In this document: positions 5,215 to 63,057 of the stretch, one piece after another
Position numbering within the stretch: position 1 is the stretch's first letter
How the letters are laid out: the number at the start of each line of letters is the position of its first letter
The notes under the pieces: generated by a model
The model's database searches: none
Told to the model about the DNA's origin: nothing
What the model saw: only the letters and a program-made list of their open reading frames with translations
Position numbers and translations under genes: made by a program
IMG/VR virus record: IMGVR_UViG_3300003322_000571
Span: 1-64,000 of that record
Strand: one strand, 5' to 3'
DNA length: 64,000 nt

Positions 5215-5469
5215 ATGGAAGGCCGTGAACTCGTCAAACTAGCTGCAGACTTTTCTGCAGGTACCGTGACTGCTGCTTATATCAAGCAAACGTTCGGTGA
5301 AGGTGTGTTCTCAACTGTCGCAGCACTAGCAGCTGGTGGAGTTGCCGGCCTTGTTACTGATGCTTTGGTTGAAACTGTGGACCAACACACGGGTGTTGTT
5401 TCTGCAGCGGGTAAAGTAGTAGACTCCGGGATCGGAGCTGTAACTTCTCTGTGGAATGATTGGTTCTGA
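5215..5469 (+). CDS. hypothetical Ala/Gly-rich protein
   Basis: AGGTGG RBS; ORF. Confidence 0.65.
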   Translation: MEGRELVKLAADFSAGTVTAAYIKQTFGEGVFSTVAALAAGGVAGLVTDALVETVDQHTGVVSAAGKVVDSGIGAVTSLWNDWF

Positions 5470-5470
5470 T

Positions 5471-5638
5471 ATGTGGTACGAACAAGAAGATGCAATCTTT
5501 CCACCACGTGTGGCAATTCTACTAGAAGGTAGTATTGTCCAAGTTGGCAATCGTTGTTACGTTAAAAACGATCGTTGGTCAAACGCCCGTGCGGTAACAA
5601 ATTCGCTTGAACAAGCGTTTTTGATTGCTGGATTTTAA
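5471..5638 (+). CDS. hypothetical protein
   Basis: Abuts the upstream gene. Confidence 0.5.
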   Translation: MWYEQEDAIFPPRVAILLEGSIVQVGNRCYVKNDRWSNARAVTNSLEQAFLIAGF

Positions 5639-7901: not shown

Positions 7902-8378
7902 ATGGCAGACAAAATTACCAAAGAGAAGATTGAAGCAGTTGTATCCGATTGCCAATCTTTTAGAGAGTTAACGATCAAACTTGGCCGAGCGCCGTTAGGC
8001 GGAAACATCTCAGAGATGAAACGCAGGTGTATCAAACTGGGAATCGACACGTCCCATATGCTTGGGAAATCTCATGCTAAGGGAAGTACATCTAACAAAA
8101 GACGAACACCCGCTGAGATATTGGTGGAACGTGATCGATTGCAAGGACGTGCACCTATTGAACAGTTACGTAGAGCACTAAAAGAAAGTGGTGTACAGTA
8201 TCAATGTCAAGTATGTTCGTTAAAAGATTGGAACGGTAAGCCGTTAACTTTACACATCGATCACATAGATGGCCAATACTGGAACTGTAGATTGACGAAT
8301 TTGAGGTACATTTGTCCTAATTGTCATTCGCAGACACCCACGTATTGTGGCAAAAACGTTAATGCCCACGTATGCTAA
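7902..8378 (+). CDS. HNH homing endonuclease
   Basis: CQVC...LHIDHIDG...NLRYICPNCHSQT. Confidence 0.9.
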   Translation: MADKITKEKIEAVVSDCQSFRELTIKLGRAPLGGNISEMKRRCIKLGIDTSHMLGKSHAKGSTSNKRRTPAEILVERDRLQGRAPIEQLRRALKESGVQYQCQVCSLKDWNGKPLTLHIDHIDGQYWNCRLTNLRYICPNCHSQTPTYCGKNVNAHVC

Positions 8379-41350: not shown

Positions 41351-41763
41351 TGTCGTACGCAAAAAAGACGATCACTTGTATCTATTGCGGTTGTACCAAA
41401 GATCAAAGCCGGCATTCTGCCAAAGGTAAGTACTGTTCCAATAAATGTCAACAGGACTTCCAATATCAACAATACGTCACTCAATGGAAATCAGGCGAGG
41501 TGACTGGTCTCGTTGGTAAGACAGGTATTAGTTACCATGTTCGCAGATATGTGTTTGCGAAATATAACAACAAGTGCTGTATTTGTGGCTGGCGTGAACA
41601 GCATCCCACAGATGGTTCAATCCCTCTAGAAATTGATCATATTGATGGCGATTGGACTAACACCATTGAGAGTAATCTTCGGTTGCTATGTCCCAACTGT
41701 CATAGTTTGACCCCTACATATAAAAGTAGGAATCGTGGTAAGAGTTCACGAACGTATAAATAA
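41350..41763 (+). CDS. HNH endonuclease
   Basis: YCSNKC, LEIDHIDG, NLRLLCPNCH. Confidence 0.9.
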   Translation: MSYAKKTITCIYCGCTKDQSRHSAKGKYCSNKCQQDFQYQQYVTQWKSGEVTGLVGKTGISYHVRRYVFAKYNNKCCICGWREQHPTDGSIPLEIDHIDGDWTNTIESNLRLLCPNCHSLTPTYKSRNRGKSSRTYK

Positions 41764-59766: not shown

Positions 59767-59957
59767 AAGACAAAATAGGTCAGAAACTAGCTGTACATGA
59801 CCGCGTAGCGACGACGTTGTATGGTGCTTTGTGCGTTGGAGTTATTACAAAGTTGACAAAGGCGTATGTCTACGTACTAGCCCTTGACGAGACGGCGATG
59901 TTAGCGACCTTTAAGACGACTTCCAGCAACGTGATTAAGATTGGAAACACAGAATGA
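59763..59957 (+). CDS. hypothetical protein
   Basis: Coupled ORF. Confidence 0.55.
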   Translation: MKDKIGQKLAVHDRVATTLYGALCVGVITKLTKAYVYVLALDETAMLATFKTTSSNVIKIGNTE

Positions 59958-60382
59958 TTCTAAAAGAAAAGACACTAATGAGGGTAGATGCCCCTAATCG
60001 TAATATGCGTCAATATCCACGCGAGGTCGTTGAAGCTGCTCTTGCAACGAAAACGACGATGTACGGATTGCTAGGCGAACCGGCAATTGTTGGTGATGAC
60101 GAGGGAACGTTTAAAATTGATGTCCCAACTGCCGAGAACGCTGCTTTTGTTGCTTCCAACTTCAAGTTTGATGGTGACTACGTTGTCTGCGATGTTGAAA
60201 CACTTGATACTCATACAGGACGAATTTTCGAGCAATTGACAACTTTGCCTAAAGGTTGTGGATTCTATCCAGTTCTGACCGTCGGTGGCTATATTGGATC
60301 AACGATGAGTGATGGTGTTCAATTAGTCACGGAGTGGGATTTTATCGTTCCGTACGCAACTGTTATTCCTATGTGGGATTAA
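59954..60382 (+). CDS. degenerate prohead protease (T4 gp21-like) paralog
   Basis: PNRNMRQYPREV, LLGE, LDT.TGR; catalytic His not evident. Confidence 0.55.
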   Translation: MILKEKTLMRVDAPNRNMRQYPREVVEAALATKTTMYGLLGEPAIVGDDEGTFKIDVPTAENAAFVASNFKFDGDYVVCDVETLDTHTGRIFEQLTTLPKGCGFYPVLTVGGYIGSTMSDGVQLVTEWDFIVPYATVIPMWD

Positions 60383-60383
60383 A

Positions 60384-60425
60384 ATGAGTCATCCTAAACA
60401 AGTTATTGTGATGCGCAAAGCATAA
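60384..60425 (+). pseudogene. orphaned original N-terminus of Pth2 (MSHPKQVIVMRKA*)
   Basis: Duplicates PKQVIVMR of ORF 61142. Confidence 0.85.
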
Positions 60426-60449
60426 ATACCTTCCAAAGAAGGTATTTGA

Positions 60450-61172
60450 ATGTACATCATCTACAAACACACTTGTACTGCCACTGGTAAAAGTTATGTT
60501 GGACAAACCAAAGAACTAACTAAGCGTACAAACGCACACAAGAGTTCAAGGTCGGGGTGCGTTGCGTTCAGGAACGCCATTAGCTGCTACGGGTGGGAGT
60601 CATTTGTCACGGTTGAGTTGGCTTGTTGCACGACGGTTGGAGACGCCAACGTTGTAGAGAGCTTGTTGATATCCGAATACAACACCATAGCACCCAGTGG
60701 ATATAACTTAACAAGTGGTGGCAAAGCATGTCAGATCAGCGAATTGACCAAGCGGAAAATTTCTGAGTCACTGAAAGGTAGGCCGAAGCCTCCCCGGACA
60801 TCATCTCACATAGAAAATCTGGCTGCACGGCGTCGAGGAAAGTCGTATGAGGAGTTATACGGCGTTGAACGAGCCAAAGAGTTAAAGAAAAACAAAGGGC
60901 ACGCGTTTGATGAGTACCATTCACAGCGACGAGGAAAAGGGTTTAACGACTTGTTTGGTGAAGACAAAGCCGCAGAGATACGCGCAAAGATGTCGAGGAC
61001 TAGGTTGACCAAAATTCCCGAATCAACCCAAGTGTTGATAGAAACAACATACGATCGTGACAAGTGTGTGACAAAAACGTTTGCGGAATCAATCGGGTTG
61101 ACAGTATACATTGTAGTTAGATATTTGAAGGACATCGGTAAATGGAATCCAAAGCAGCTCCCAAGCAGGTAA
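60450..61172 (+). CDS. GIY-YIG homing endonuclease
   Basis: IIY..T...GKSYVGQT, GYNLTSGG, NUMOD3-like repeat. Confidence 0.9.
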   Translation: MYIIYKHTCTATGKSYVGQTKELTKRTNAHKSSRSGCVAFRNAISCYGWESFVTVELACCTTVGDANVVESLLISEYNTIAPSGYNLTSGGKACQISELTKRKISESLKGRPKPPRTSSHIENLAARRRGKSYEELYGVERAKELKKNKGHAFDEYHSQRRGKGFNDLFGEDKAAEIRAKMSRTRLTKIPESTQVLIETTYDRDKCVTKTFAESIGLTVYIVVRYLKDIGKWNPKQLPSR

Positions 61173-61558
61173 TCGTAATGAGACGCGATCTGAAGATGCC
61201 GCGAGGAAAGATTGCGGCACAGGCAGCACATGCTTCAATGGCAGGCCTTCTCAACCATGTTACCTTCCGTCTTGAGGAAGACACGATGGAGGGATGGGCG
61301 TTGTCGATGCCGAAGAATGGTGCGATGTCACAGTGGTTGCGTGGCGCTTTCACCAAGGTTTGCGTTTGCGTTGAGAGTGAAGCTGAACTTGAGGCTGTGT
61401 ACAAGCAAGCTCAATTGGCTGGCCTCAACGTGTCAAAGATTGTCGATAACGGTTTGACTGTATTCGACAACGTTCCCACTTGGACGTGCATCGGTGTGGG
61501 GCCGGACTTCCCTGAGCGAATTGATCCAATCACTGGCCATTTGAAACTATACAATTGA
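61142..61558 (+). CDS. pth2: peptidyl-tRNA hydrolase Pth2
   Basis: KQVIVMRRDLKM..GKIAAQAAHA, IVDNGLT, IGVGP, ITGHLKLY. Confidence 0.93.
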   Translation: MESKAAPKQVIVMRRDLKMPRGKIAAQAAHASMAGLLNHVTFRLEEDTMEGWALSMPKNGAMSQWLRGAFTKVCVCVESEAELEAVYKQAQLAGLNVSKIVDNGLTVFDNVPTWTCIGVGPDFPERIDPITGHLKLYN

Positions 61559-62183
61559 CATAATACCAGTCTGTAACAGTTGGACTGTTGAGTTTAGCCA
61601 TTATTGACGAACGATGCATGTTGAGCGTACGAATAGCATCTCCTATTGAGTTGTACTTAACGCCAGCACATACCACTGGTTTTAATCGAGCTTGATTAGA
61701 AGAACGAAGTTTCACCTTTTGCTCTTCTGTCATTGGCACTCCTTTGTTGGATGCTGTTCTTCCGGTAAGCTTTTCGCGTTGTTCCAATGTCCATGGCTTT
61801 CCTTTGTTGGGCGCAGGTCGTCCCTTCAAAGATTCGGAGATCATCCGCTTGGAAAGTTCCGTGTGTGTTTTTCCGATGAATGTGCCGGATGTATTTCCGT
61901 TAGGATTTCCCTTTCCACCAACAGTTATATTCAAGCATAGTGGATCTCGTAACAACTCAGTGGTAACCAGTTCACTCTCAATCACCAACGCTTCTGCGCG
62001 TGTAGAGCAGATGCGAAGAACTTCACGCTTGAACAGCGATCGTCCGTATTTCCTGACGCTAGCTCTGATACGATTACCCGAACCTAAATAGTCATCTGTG
62101 CTCGCATTCTCCCCTGAATGTACGCCAATGTAAAATTGGTTTGTGTCAATGTTGACGGTCTTGTAAACAATGTGCTCTCTCAT
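61530..62183 (-). CDS. GIY-YIG (Seg-like) homing endonuclease
   Basis: IVYKTVN...FYIGVH, YLGSG, NUMOD3/NUMOD1 repeats. Confidence 0.9.
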   Translation of the reverse strand: MREHIVYKTVNIDTNQFYIGVHSGENASTDDYLGSGNRIRASVRKYGRSLFKREVLRICSTRAEALVIESELVTTELLRDPLCLNITVGGKGNPNGNTSGTFIGKTHTELSKRMISESLKGRPAPNKGKPWTLEQREKLTGRTASNKGVPMTEEQKVKLRSSNQARLKPVVCAGVKYNSIGDAIRTLNMHRSSIMAKLNSPTVTDWYYVNCIVSNGQ

Positions 62184-62206
62184 GATACCCCTCCAACGCT
62201 TATTTA

Positions 62207-62284
62207 TGGACTTGCATTGCGATTGGTCCAGACTTCCCTGAGAAGATCGATCCGATCACTCGTCAACTCAAGTTGTACAACTAA
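62207..62284 (+). pseudogene. orphaned original C-terminus of Pth2
   Basis: WTCIAIGPDFPEKIDPITRQLKLYN* versus WTCIGVGPDFPERIDPITGHLKLYN*. Confidence 0.9.
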
Positions 62285-62292
62285 GTACACCT

Positions 62293-62390
62293 GCCAGCGT
62301 TTCTAATATTGGCCTTAGGGGTGCCCTTATAAAGCACTAAGACCCGTCTAGATCAGGCGGTTAATGTGGGTTCGATTCCCATCGCTGGTA
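62293..62390 (+). tRNA. tRNA-Ile(TAT)-like with a long variable arm
   Basis: GCCAGCG/CGCTGGT; loop CT-TAT-AA; extra arm of about 28 nt. Confidence 0.7.
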
Positions 62391-62446
62391 CACACAACCC
62401 TAATATTTCTGTTGGGGTAACGTACTCAACCATATATACTTTCTTC

Positions 62447-62513
62447 AGCTGTTGCGTAGTTCAAGGGTTACTTCTTTTGGTGAAACTATCCCCTTGACGT
62501 TTTAATCTCAGCT
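62447..62513 (+). ncRNA. Y RNA-like RNA 6: minimal
   Basis: AGCTGTTGCGTAG-TTCAAGGG-TTACTTC...CCCTTGAC-GTT-TTAATCTCAGCT; TATACT -10 box just upstream. Confidence 0.75.
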
Positions 62514-62526
62514 TTAACATATGTAC

Positions 62527-62588
62527 GCACGTGGGTGCAAGGTTAACTGTTCCCGTCTCATGACCGGACGTTAGTCTCCACGCTGCCA
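62527..62588 (+). ncRNA. CCA-ended hairpin displaying a Met(CAT)-like anticodon loop
   Basis: Paired ends GCA-CGTGG/CCACG-C-TGC-CA; apical loop CTCATGA. Confidence 0.4.
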
Positions 62589-62600
62589 ACTTTTGGTTGA

Positions 62601-62635
62601 AGCCCTGGTATGCAACACTGCTACCAGGGCTTTTC
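62601..62635 (+). terminator. intrinsic terminator
   Basis: AGCCCTGGTA...TACCAGGGCTTTT. Confidence 0.7.
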
Positions 62636-62652
62636 CTTTTTGGAGAAAATAA

Positions 62653-63057
62653 ATGTCGCTAGGTACAATTAAAGATGTCGTAATTGCTACGGTGGATGTC
62701 GCTAATCTCAACAATCGCGTTTACCCAAAGAACGTGATTGAAGAAGCTGTTCGTCAGCGTGTTCATCCGATTTTCGGCCGAGTCGGTATGCCGGAAGCAG
62801 GATCGTCTTGTGAGGTCGACCTTCGTGATGTATCACATCAAGTTACCGATCTCCGAATCACCGAAGATGGTAACTTGACTGGCACAGTTGTCGTCCTTGA
62901 CACGCCTCCCGGTAGGTTGCTGACATCATTGTTGACAGAGAACCTCGACATCACCTTCCGCATGGCAGGATATGGTGATCTAATTGATAAGGATGGATAC
63001 ACAGAAGTGACCAACTTTCGTCTATCATCGATCAATGCTGTCGCAGACGGTGCTTGA
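62653..63057 (+). CDS. degenerate prohead protease (gp21-like) paralog
   Basis: NLNNRVYP, VSHQVT, VLDTPPGR. Confidence 0.65.
   Translation: MSLGTIKDVVIATVDVANLNNRVYPKNVIEEAVRQRVHPIFGRVGMPEAGSSCEVDLRDVSHQVTDLRITEDGNLTGTVVVLDTPPGRLLTSLLTENLDITFRMAGYGDLIDKDGYTEVTNFRLSSINAVADGA

Follow-up and report, generated by a model that had tools for sequence, protein, structure and literature searches.

In a 350-kb jumbo phage from soil or root, two selfish endonuclease genes have each inserted into one end of the small peptidyl-tRNA hydrolase gene pth2 and have each brought a diverged spare copy of the end that was displaced, so that the gene stays whole, while a near-identical phage from another soil sample still has the uninvaded gene. 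The locus lies in the 64,000-nt stretch that was analysed (the window), which corresponds to positions 1 to 64,000 of IMG/VR virus record IMGVR_UViG_3300003322_000571. An initial sequence-only reading had described an old N-terminus upstream of a GIY-YIG gene whose tail encodes a new Pth2 start in another frame, an old C-terminus beyond an antisense GIY-YIG gene whose tail overlaps the new C-terminus, and duplicated peptides that are near-identical while their codons differ, and all of these elements were found where that reading had placed them. Its interpretation, that free-standing homing endonucleases had invaded pth2 at both ends and left a chimeric gene with recoded replacement termini, is supported by the follow-up analysis, although recoding is well supported only at the N-terminal end and the target sites are known as insertion points, with the cut positions themselves remaining an inference.

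Structure of the invaded locus

The layout of the locus is given in Table 1. At the N-terminal end the duplicated peptide PKQVIVMR is identical at 8/8 residues but at only 16/24 nucleotides, with 7 of 8 codons differing, while at the C-terminal end 20/25 residues and 53/75 nucleotides are identical and 10 of the 20 identical residues use a different codon. When Pth2 was compared by tblastn with the whole 350-kb genome, the C-terminal remnant was the only second hit (E 2e-11). A genome-wide scan for duplicates of ORF termini within 3 kb returned only paralogue families and no other case of this kind, the best-looking candidate, at 122378-125481, being two tandem tail-fibre paralogues as opposed to an endonuclease event.

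Table 1. Features of the pth2 locus, with positions counted along the window.
Feature	Position	Strand	Description
Upstream neighbour	59954..60382	+	Small prohead-protease-like (S77-like) protein; its stop lies one base before the native pth2 start codon
Native N-terminal remnant of pth2	60384..60420	+	13-codon remnant (MSHPKQVIVMRK plus the first base of the next codon), now running into a stop at 60423-60425; 60384-60425 encodes MSHPKQVIVMRKA and a stop
Cassette 1	60421..61189	+	769 nt; hairpin, HEG1 and replacement N-terminus
Hairpin	60423..60448	+	11 bp with a CAAA loop; holds the likely HEG1 Shine-Dalgarno (GAAGG, 60438-60442); an outer helix pairs the HEG1 AUG
HEG1	60450..61172	+	Predicted free-standing GIY-YIG homing endonuclease, 240 aa, intact ORF; its last 31 nt overlap the start of pth2 in another frame
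Replacement N-terminus of pth2	61142..61189	+	MESKAAPKQVIVMRRD; part of cassette 1; its first 31 nt also encode the HEG1 tail
Chimeric pth2	61142..61558	+	138 aa, functional as inferred from sequence; imported N-end, resident body, imported C-end
Resident pth2 body	61190..61480	+	Shared with the endonuclease-free allele
Cassette 2	61481..62206		726 nt; replacement C-terminus, antisense HEG2 and its 5' leader; boundary ambiguous by 5 nt (TGGAC on both sides)
Replacement C-terminus of pth2	61481..61558	+	WTCIGVGPDFPERIDPITGHLKLYN and a stop
HEG2	61530..62183	-	Predicted Seg-like GIY-YIG/NUMOD3 homing endonuclease, 217 aa, intact ORF; GGAGG Shine-Dalgarno at 62190-62194 on the minus strand; its last 29 nt overlap the pth2 3' end, the last 7 residues being read antisense through it
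Native C-terminal remnant of pth2	62207..62284	+	25 codons plus stop, WTCIAIGPDFPEKIDPITRQLKLYN and a stop; no longer attached to a start
tRNA	62293..62390	+	Conserved, long variable arm, anticodon loop CUUAUAA; lies 8 nt after the native stop

The genome is a metagenome-assembled viral contig, which raises the possibility that the assembly joined strain variants. This can be all but excluded, as a separate Logan assembly of the source run gives a 4489-nt contig that covers 59900-62700 with 0 differences, and the duplicated segments are only 67-71% identical, each pair being separated by 0.65-0.75 kb that holds a complete ORF.

The chimeric gene matches the Pth2 family (PF01981) at E 3.3e-29 over profile positions 2-115 of 115, keeps the conserved terminal motifs in an alignment of Pth2 proteins, and has 265 homologues at E<=1e-10, among which P0002, its closest relative, is 77% identical. 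A near-identity DNA search of 50,697 public phage records found no match, while a protein search found Pth2 in 34 records, all under 60% identical, and a Pth2 search of IMG/VR gave 20 loci, all at most 49% identical. The upstream neighbour was assigned on a weak PF03420 match. The GC and GC3 of the cassettes (0.45-0.46 GC) do not differ enough from those of their neighbours to mark them as foreign, and a scan for promoters and terminators showed no enrichment over shuffled sequence, although a 10/12 sigma-70-like site, on which no conclusion is rested, lies at 61098-61125, just before the new pth2 start.

The two endonuclease genes

HEG1 matches GIY-YIG (PF01541) at 34.5 bits against a cut-off of 22.6 bits (E 2.5e-8) and phrog_314 at E 2e-30 over residues 1-238, and its residues Y5, Y16, G18, E70 and N86 are invariant in an alignment of the endonucleases (A2). 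In contrast, the assignment of HEG2 to GIY-YIG does not rest on a Pfam match above the cut-off, as SegE_GIY-YIG scores 23.3 bits, just under the cut-off of 25 bits, but on its match to phrog_314 ('homing endonuclease', E 8e-43), on its homology to HEG1 (32% identity over 142 aa, E 2e-11) and on conserved catalytic residues, the Tyr, Tyr, Gly, Glu and Asn being invariant in A2. With respect to C-terminal DNA-binding modules, NUMOD3 scores 22.9 bits in HEG2 (cut-off 20.4 bits) and 16.5 bits, below the cut-off, in HEG1; a weak match of HEG2 to the I-TevI DNA-binding domain (E 0.07) ends WYYVN against WFYIN; and no PDB hit was found for HEG1. The two are the only genes in the 350 kb with a NUMOD3 match, that of HEG1 being the sub-threshold one, and they account for two of only three GIY-YIG hits. 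Both match phrog_314 over their full length, and their conserved endonuclease domains end at the edges of the pth2 ORF, with only short read-through tails. Neither is embedded in an intron or intein, as each has a separate ORF with its own start, one of them on the opposite strand, and an Rfam search found no intron between 60300 and 62700.

The hairpin upstream of HEG1 has a predicted dG of -18.7 kcal/mol (z -5.4), and 0 of 200 shuffled sequences fold as well. A role for this structure in translational control is inferred.

It is possible, though on balance doubtful, that the structure is a fossil, in which the insertions happened as described but one or both endonucleases are now inactive or domesticated and the cassettes no longer home. 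In line with this, no other indexed sequencing run holds either endonuclease near-identically, a search of 5.8 billion proteins returned nothing closer than about 54% identity over part of the length, so that no donor and no other occupied site was found, and HEG2 lacks an Arg at the position used by I-TevI-type enzymes in A2. However, both ORFs are intact and full length against phrog_314 and keep the catalytic Tyr, Tyr, Glu and Asn, the placement of the HEG1 ribosome-binding site in a strong hairpin suggests maintained regulation, and the existence of an invaded and an uninvaded allele among near-identical phages is the signature of a recent or ongoing invasion.

The endonuclease-free allele

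The sequence-only reading had named, as the observation that would count against it, relatives that lack the endonucleases but carry the same duplications, and the relatives examined show the opposite. Sequencing run X2, a soil metagenome from 2024 that belongs to a different study from the source, holds contigs of a near-identical phage, one of which joins 60418 to 61190 (771 nt skipped), reading ...MRKDLKM with 4 bridging letters, while another joins 61480 to 62207 (726 nt skipped). Each joint has at least 53 nt on both sides at 94-100% identity, although the two contigs are short (252 and 194 nt) and of low depth (2-3x). Together they describe an endonuclease-free pth2 made of the native N-end, the same body and the native C-end, with no duplication. 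X2 contigs cover parts of the upstream gene at 97-99% identity and show 0/54 differences in the C-terminal remnant, 2/53 differences over 61190-61242 and 9/140 over 61341-61480; the last of these segments differs more than the flanks do, which hints at some co-conversion, the extent of which could not be mapped. Degenerate DNA patterns encoding the native N junction and the native C end found nothing in the viral or metagenome contig collections searched, and no full-length empty-site allele was therefore retrieved. Three more distant syntenic relatives (L022, L023 and L024) also carry a single uninterrupted pth2, with no endonuclease and no second Pth2-like fragment.

Both remnants sit in the native context. 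The N-terminal remnant abuts the stop codon of the upstream gene with the same tight stop/start spacing that pth2 has with its upstream gene in L023, and the C-terminal remnant is followed by the tRNA (Rfam 32.4 bits, gathering score 29), homologous sequence to which follows the pth2 stop in L023 and L024, the L023 copy being called tRNA-Ile(tat) by ARAGORN. The N-terminal remnant matches L023 at 24/27 nt and L024 at 23/27 nt, as opposed to 16/27 and 15/27 for the replacement, which also matches the remnant at only 16/27 nt and shares 0 of 8 non-Met third codon positions with the native copy, L023 or L024. This signal rests on only 8 codons, which are partly constrained by the overlapping HEG1 frame. 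The divergence ends sharply at 61189. At the C-terminal end the divergence between the two copies (53/75 nt) lies within the ordinary range between lineages (45-54/75), and against the distant lineages this end is not discriminating (51-54 against 49-54 of 75), so that selection for cleavage resistance is not demonstrated there.

Before the read data were examined, it appeared plausible that a single imported unit, HEG1-pth2-HEG2, had replaced the middle of the resident gene, in which case the whole of the present pth2 would be foreign. Pth2 is 77% identical to the copy of the L022 phage while neighbouring orthologues are 43-71% identical, the flanking genes of the window are about equally distant from L022, L023 and L024, and the old ends look L023/L024-like (MRK, CIAIGP) whereas the present gene looks L022-like throughout. 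This reading was considered seriously but is contradicted by the X2 allele and is now very unlikely, as that allele has the same body while the nearest other lineage is only about 73% identical at the nucleotide level, and divergence starts sharply at the cassette boundaries. Equally hard to sustain is the view that the invaded arrangement is ancestral, that the short fragments are foreign hitch-hikers and that the X2 allele arose by precise loss of both cassettes. While the replacement ends are slightly more like P0002 than the remnants are (11/14 against 9/14 aa at the N end and 20/25 against 17/25 at the C end), and endonuclease loss is part of the accepted homing cycle, such loss would need two deletions whose end points fall exactly at the outer edges of 24-nt and 75-nt repeats that are only 67-71% identical. 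In addition, all four endonuclease-free relatives share the uninterrupted state, and the remnants have the conserved context and the similarity to L023 described above.

Interpretation

The explanation favoured here, with high confidence, is that two free-standing GIY-YIG homing-endonuclease cassettes, unrelated in detail, have each inserted cleanly into the resident pth2 gene, one at codon 13/14 and the other at codon 113/114. In this view, each cassette carries the endonuclease gene plus a diverged copy of the gene end that it displaces, probably taken from a donor phage in which the endonuclease sat just outside pth2, and its ORF still runs a few codons into that donor-derived end. The replacement end is fused in frame to the resident body, leaving Pth2 full length, while the displaced native ends survive as untranslated remnants outside the cassettes. 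During co-infection, each enzyme would cut the uninvaded allele at or near its insertion point, and the break would be repaired from the invaded genome, with homology provided by the native remnant plus flank on the outer side and by the gene body on the inner side, so that the cassette is copied in. The invaded genome would be immune because the native site is split by the cassette and the contiguous replacement copy differs at many positions. The analysis demonstrates the anatomy of the locus, the clean insertion boundaries, the existence of the empty-site allele and the intact endonuclease ORFs, while cleavage, the cut positions, mobility of the cassettes and immunity of the replacement ends are inferred from sequence.

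A more speculative and rather unlikely possibility is that the two cassettes act together as a pincer on an essential translation-rescue gene of a tRNA-rich jumbo phage, cutting the pth2 of a competitor at both ends in mixed infections, excising its body and forcing replacement. This would make the arrangement an interference-competition weapon as well as a selfish element, and it would also be the first phage example of terminus-replacing endonuclease cassettes, including one that replaces a start codon and N-terminus.

Occupied and empty alleles of two homing-endonuclease sites are both seen in wild, near-identical phages, with insertion points known to within a few bases and each native site able to be set beside its replacement. 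The target sites of two uncharacterised GIY-YIG enzymes are directly testable with four short substrates. The locus shows how a free-standing endonuclease can enter a coding sequence without harming it, by carrying the displaced terminus, a route previously documented for C-termini in fungal mitochondria. It also carries a warning for annotation, in that short 'orphan' peptides next to phage endonuclease genes can be displaced gene ends, and the adjacent gene can be a natural chimera.

Comparison with known systems

The closest precedent is found in the mitochondrial mobile endonuclease ORFs (mORFs) that create hybrid genes, in Allomyces macrogynus atp6 and in Glomus sp. atp6, atp9, cox2 and nad3 (PMC3630166). 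In these systems an endonuclease ORF is inserted near a gene end together with a foreign, diverged copy of that end fused in frame, and the native end persists beyond the insert and is nearly identical to the uninvaded relative, while the inserted end is much more diverged (64-81% in Glomus, 67-71% here). In the phage locus, by comparison, the native ends are continuous with the body in X2, with the C-terminal end discriminating only against X2 and not against the distant lineages. The mitochondrial cases involve only C-termini and one element per gene, and the mORF is often in phase with the gene, whereas here the host is a bacteriophage, both termini of one 138-codon gene are invaded, the endonucleases use separate frames or the opposite strand, and one cassette replaces a start codon and N-terminus. 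Literature searches, including the work of Barth et al., found no phage example and none with both ends of one gene invaded, which is not proof that none exists.

The free-standing GIY-YIG Seg endonucleases of T4-like phages (SegB, PMC2330249; reviewed in PMC2993671) are phage GIY-YIG/NUMOD3 enzymes (NUMOD3 being above the cut-off here only in HEG2) that are present or absent among close relatives, as is seen at this locus, and are thought to spread by intronless homing, cutting the endonuclease-free allele in co-infection with co-conversion of the flanks. However, Seg and Mob genes normally sit between genes and leave no duplicated gene fragments, and immunity comes from natural polymorphism in the neighbouring gene, not from a carried replacement end. 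In T4 mobA with the gene 60 bypass cassette, and in Aeromonas phage Aeh1 nrdA split by mobE, a phage endonuclease is inserted inside or at the edge of a conserved gene, the host gene stays functional and the insertion itself protects the site from cleavage. Those insertions split the gene into two polypeptides or add a translational bypass, while pth2 remains one uninterrupted ORF because each cassette supplies a spare terminus. Lastly, integrase-driven elements that insert in the 3' end of a gene or tRNA, such as e14 and phage 21 in icd, keep the target gene intact by a carried, synonymously diverged copy of the displaced end and leave the native end as a pseudo-fragment, but their mechanism is site-specific recombination by an integrase at att sites, as opposed to the double-strand-break repair driven by a homing endonuclease that is inferred here.

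The pth2 locus and its two endonuclease genes

The 350,089-bp viral contig, which comes from a root metagenome and has a GC content of 0.48, carries direct terminal repeats and is estimated to be complete. It represents a tRNA-rich jumbo phage, with 30 tRNA genes called in its first 64 kb (the window). At the pth2 locus, an ATG one base after the end of a small S77-like gene opens a short reading frame that encodes the N-terminal remnant of pth2, and this is followed by a strong hairpin, a GIY-YIG gene (HEG1), pth2 itself, a gene on the opposite strand (HEG2), an orphan reading frame that encodes the C-terminal remnant, and a tRNA. The coordinates of these features, and of others mentioned below, are collected in the following table.

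Features of the pth2 locus and of other regions and contigs mentioned in the text
Feature	Sequence	Coordinates	Strand	Description
HNH_3-like match	window	8241-8309		in a 214-aa ORF; next to tRNA-Leu (8364)
HNH_3-like match	window	41614-41688		in a 152-aa ORF; next to tRNA-Thr (41771)
Translation/RNA module	window and genome	58762-63999, and to about 67 kb of the genome		shared with L022, L023 and L024
Upstream S77-like gene	window	59954-60382		142 aa
N-terminal remnant ORF	window	60384-60425		13 codons, MSHPKQVIVMRKA*
Cassette 1	window	60421-61189		769 nt; hairpin, HEG1 and 16 replacement codons
Hairpin	window	60423-60448		11 bp
HEG1	window	60450-61172	+	240 aa
Sigma-70-like match	window	61098-61125		TTGACA, 16-nt spacer, GATATT; 10/12
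pth2	window	61142-61558		138 aa; starts 31 nt before the end of HEG1, in another frame
Cassette 2	window	61481-62206		726 nt; 25 replacement codons plus stop, antisense HEG2 and its leader with a GGAGG ribosome-binding site
HEG2	window	61530-62183	-	217 aa; overlaps the pth2 3' end by 29 nt
C-terminal remnant	window	62207-62284		orphan reading frame, WTCIAIGPDFPEKIDPITRQLKLYN*
tRNA	window	62293-62390		8 nt after the stop of the C-terminal remnant
Downstream S77-like gene	window	62653-63057		134 aa
Third GIY-YIG hit	genome, outside the window	91904-92158		in a 245-aa ORF
pth2	L022	6001-6411
tRNA	L023	5419-5507
tRNA	L024	about 5400-5500
pth2 (protein P0028)	L027	5001-5729		242 aa

In profile searches, HEG1 was found to have a GIY-YIG domain above Pfam's cut-off, while HEG2 has NUMOD3 above the cut-off and SegE_GIY-YIG just below it. 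Both match phrog_314 'homing endonuclease' over their whole length (E 2e-30 and 8e-43, respectively), they are 32% identical to each other over 142 residues, and both keep the invariant Tyr, Tyr, Gly, Glu and Asn of the family. The C-terminus of HEG2 weakly resembles the I-TevI DNA-binding domain, ending WYYVN against WFYIN; the conserved protein therefore ends right at the pth2 stop codon, and only a 7-residue tail is read antisense through pth2. Pth2 matches PF01981 over the full profile. HEG1 and HEG2 are the only two genes with NUMOD3 matches in the 350-kb genome and account for two of only three GIY-YIG hits, where the third is weak (22 bits, just under the cut-off) and lies in an ORF that is not detectably similar to HEG1 or HEG2 by BLAST. 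Weak HNH_3-like matches, below Pfam's cut-off, also occur in two ORFs inside the tRNA arrays. These may be further homing endonucleases and, if so, could relate to the many duplicated tRNA genes (Gly-tcc x2, Asn-gtt x3, Ala-tgc x3, Thr-tgt x3).

Both ends of pth2 are present twice. At the N end, PKQVIVMR is identical at 8/8 amino acids but at only 16/24 nucleotides, while at the C end the two copies are identical at 20/25 amino acids and 53/75 nucleotides, with half of the identical residues using a different codon. The C-terminal remnant is the only second Pth2-like hit in the genome (E 2e-11), and a genome-wide scan for duplicates of ORF ends within 3 kb found nothing else of this type. The sequence-only reading, in which pth2 was described as invaded at both ends by two endonucleases that each supply a recoded replacement terminus, is confirmed in what it observed.

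Native context of the two remnants

The nearest Pth2 proteins in a collection of 5.8 billion proteins are P0002 (77% identity), P0003 (65%), P0004 (62%) and P0005 (57%). Their contigs (L022, L023 and L024-L026) are syntenic with the window, sharing the order ADP-ribosylglycohydrolase, small ORFs, pth2 and then a TROVE/VWA protein, and none of them has an endonuclease next to pth2 or a second Pth2-like fragment. In L023 the pth2 start lies one base after the stop of the upstream gene, which is the same tight spacing that the N-terminal remnant has with its own upstream gene in the window. In L023 and L024 the pth2 stop is followed within about 10 nt by the same tRNA that follows the C-terminal remnant. 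Both remnants therefore sit in the native context of the gene.

This tRNA scores 32.4 bits in Rfam against a gathering score of 29, and has a long variable arm and the anticodon loop CUUAUAA (UAU, formally Ile). It is missed by ARAGORN in the window and in L024 but is called tRNA-Ile(tat) in L023, and its anticodon stem shows compensatory changes between the window and L024. A type-II-shaped tRNA-Ile(UAU) that is tightly linked to a peptidyl-tRNA hydrolase in three lineages is unusual. The locus forms part of a conserved translation/RNA module that is shared across several uncultured jumbo phages (the window phage and those of L022, L023 and L024), and that comprises an RF-1/PCRF-like gene, an Rv2179c-like exonuclease, ADP-ribosylglycohydrolase, a DUF7205-like small ORF, pth2, a tRNA, a TROVE (Ro60-like)+VWA protein and a Gp23-like capsid gene. 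The two small genes that flank the pth2 locus resemble the prohead-protease S77 fold and are paralogues with 28% identity to each other, although both are too short to be a full protease and only the downstream one is conserved in L022. Another link between pth2 and ADP-ribosylation genes is seen in L027, a contig of another uncultured phage, where a Pth2 with a roughly 110-residue N-terminal extension sits between PARP-like, DUF3850 and NADAR genes.

An endonuclease-free allele in an independent metagenome

The decisive evidence came from contigs of four public sequencing runs that were compared with positions 59900-62700. The source run (X1) gives one independently assembled contig of 4489 nt that covers the stretch with 0 differences, which rules out an assembly artefact. 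Run X2, a soil metagenome from another study dated 2024, contains low-depth contigs of a near-identical phage. One X2 contig of 252 nt covers 60224-60418, then four letters, then 61190-61242; it skips 771 nt and reads ...ATG CGC AAG GAC CTG AAG ATG..., that is MSHPKQVIVMRKDLKM.... Another X2 contig of 194 nt covers 61341-61480 joined directly to 62207-62260, skipping 726 nt, with TGGAC common to both sides. Differences from the window are 1/112, 6/195, 2/53, 9/140 and 0/54 in the five covered pieces.

An endonuclease-free allele therefore exists, and it consists of exactly the native N-terminal remnant, the same body and the native C-terminal remnant. Duplications shared by endonuclease-free relatives had been named beforehand as the finding that would overturn the sequence-only reading, and this allele does not carry them; the interpretation of a two-sided invasion is supported. 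The same contigs dispose of an alternative in which the whole gene was imported together with both endonucleases as one block. This idea arose from the L022-like character of the present gene as opposed to the L023/L024-like remnants, but the body is shared with the X2 allele at 94-96% and divergence begins sharply at the cassette edges. Pth2 is 77% identical between the window phage and the L022 phage, while most neighbouring orthologues are 43-71% identical, and the remnants look more like L023/L024 than the body does, which suggests earlier mosaic exchange at this gene, independent of the present cassettes.

Anatomy and divergence of the cassettes

Comparison with the X2 allele defines two cassettes, both of which are clean insertions with essentially no loss of resident sequence. 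At the N end, the four sequences of endonuclease-free type (the native remnant, L022, L023 and L024) share 4-6 of 9 third codon positions with each other, while the replacement copy shares only the Met codon with the remnant, L023 and L024, that is, 0 of 8 informative positions. This fits escape from cleavage, although it rests on 8 codons, of which the first four lie in the overlap with HEG1. At the C end, by contrast, the identity of remnant and replacement (53/75 nucleotides) lies within the range of any two lineages (45-54/75), and ordinary divergence of a donor allele explains it.

The likely Shine-Dalgarno of HEG1 lies within the 11-bp hairpin and its AUG is paired by an outer helix, so that both are buried in a predicted structure of -18.7 kcal/mol (z -5.4), which also overlaps the stop codon that ends the N-terminal remnant. 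This recalls the hairpin-controlled translation of T4 endonuclease genes, and it may be a translational switch of that kind, a role that is inferred. A sigma-70-like promoter match lies inside the 3' end of HEG1, 17 nt before the replacement pth2 start, and could let the cassette supply its own promoter for the chimeric gene; however, it is a single consensus match, and the promoter scan showed no enrichment over shuffled sequence.

Inferred mechanism and origin

What the analysis demonstrates is two clean insertions, intact endonuclease ORFs, an intact chimeric pth2, and the coexistence of occupied and empty alleles, while cleavage, repair and protection are inferred from established knowledge of intronless homing in T4-like phages (PMC2330249, PMC2993671). 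In this view, each enzyme would cut the empty allele near its insertion point, and repair would copy the cassette, using the remnant plus flank and the gene body as homology arms. The occupied genome would be protected because the native site is split and the contiguous copy is diverged. The slightly higher divergence in 61341-61480 may be a trace of co-conversion. The first insertion probably came from a donor in which each endonuclease lay just outside a diverged pth2; both conserved endonuclease domains end at the edges of the pth2 ORF, and the likely route was one homologous and one illegitimate junction. The arrangement is of interest because both inferred target sites are defined almost to the base and are open to direct testing.

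Comparison with known systems

The architecture matches that of the mitochondrial mobile endonuclease ORFs that create hybrid genes, which comprise Allomyces atp6 and Glomus atp6, atp9, cox2 and nad3. In those cases an inserted foreign C-terminus replaces the native one, where the native end persists and is 91-98% identical to the uninvaded relative, as opposed to 64-81% for the insert (PMC3630166). Literature searches for a phage precedent found none, which is not proof that none exists. The enzymes themselves belong with the phage Seg-like GIY-YIG endonucleases. What differs here from the mitochondrial hybrid genes is the phage setting, the replacement of an N-terminus and start codon, and the presence of two independent cassettes on one 417-bp gene.
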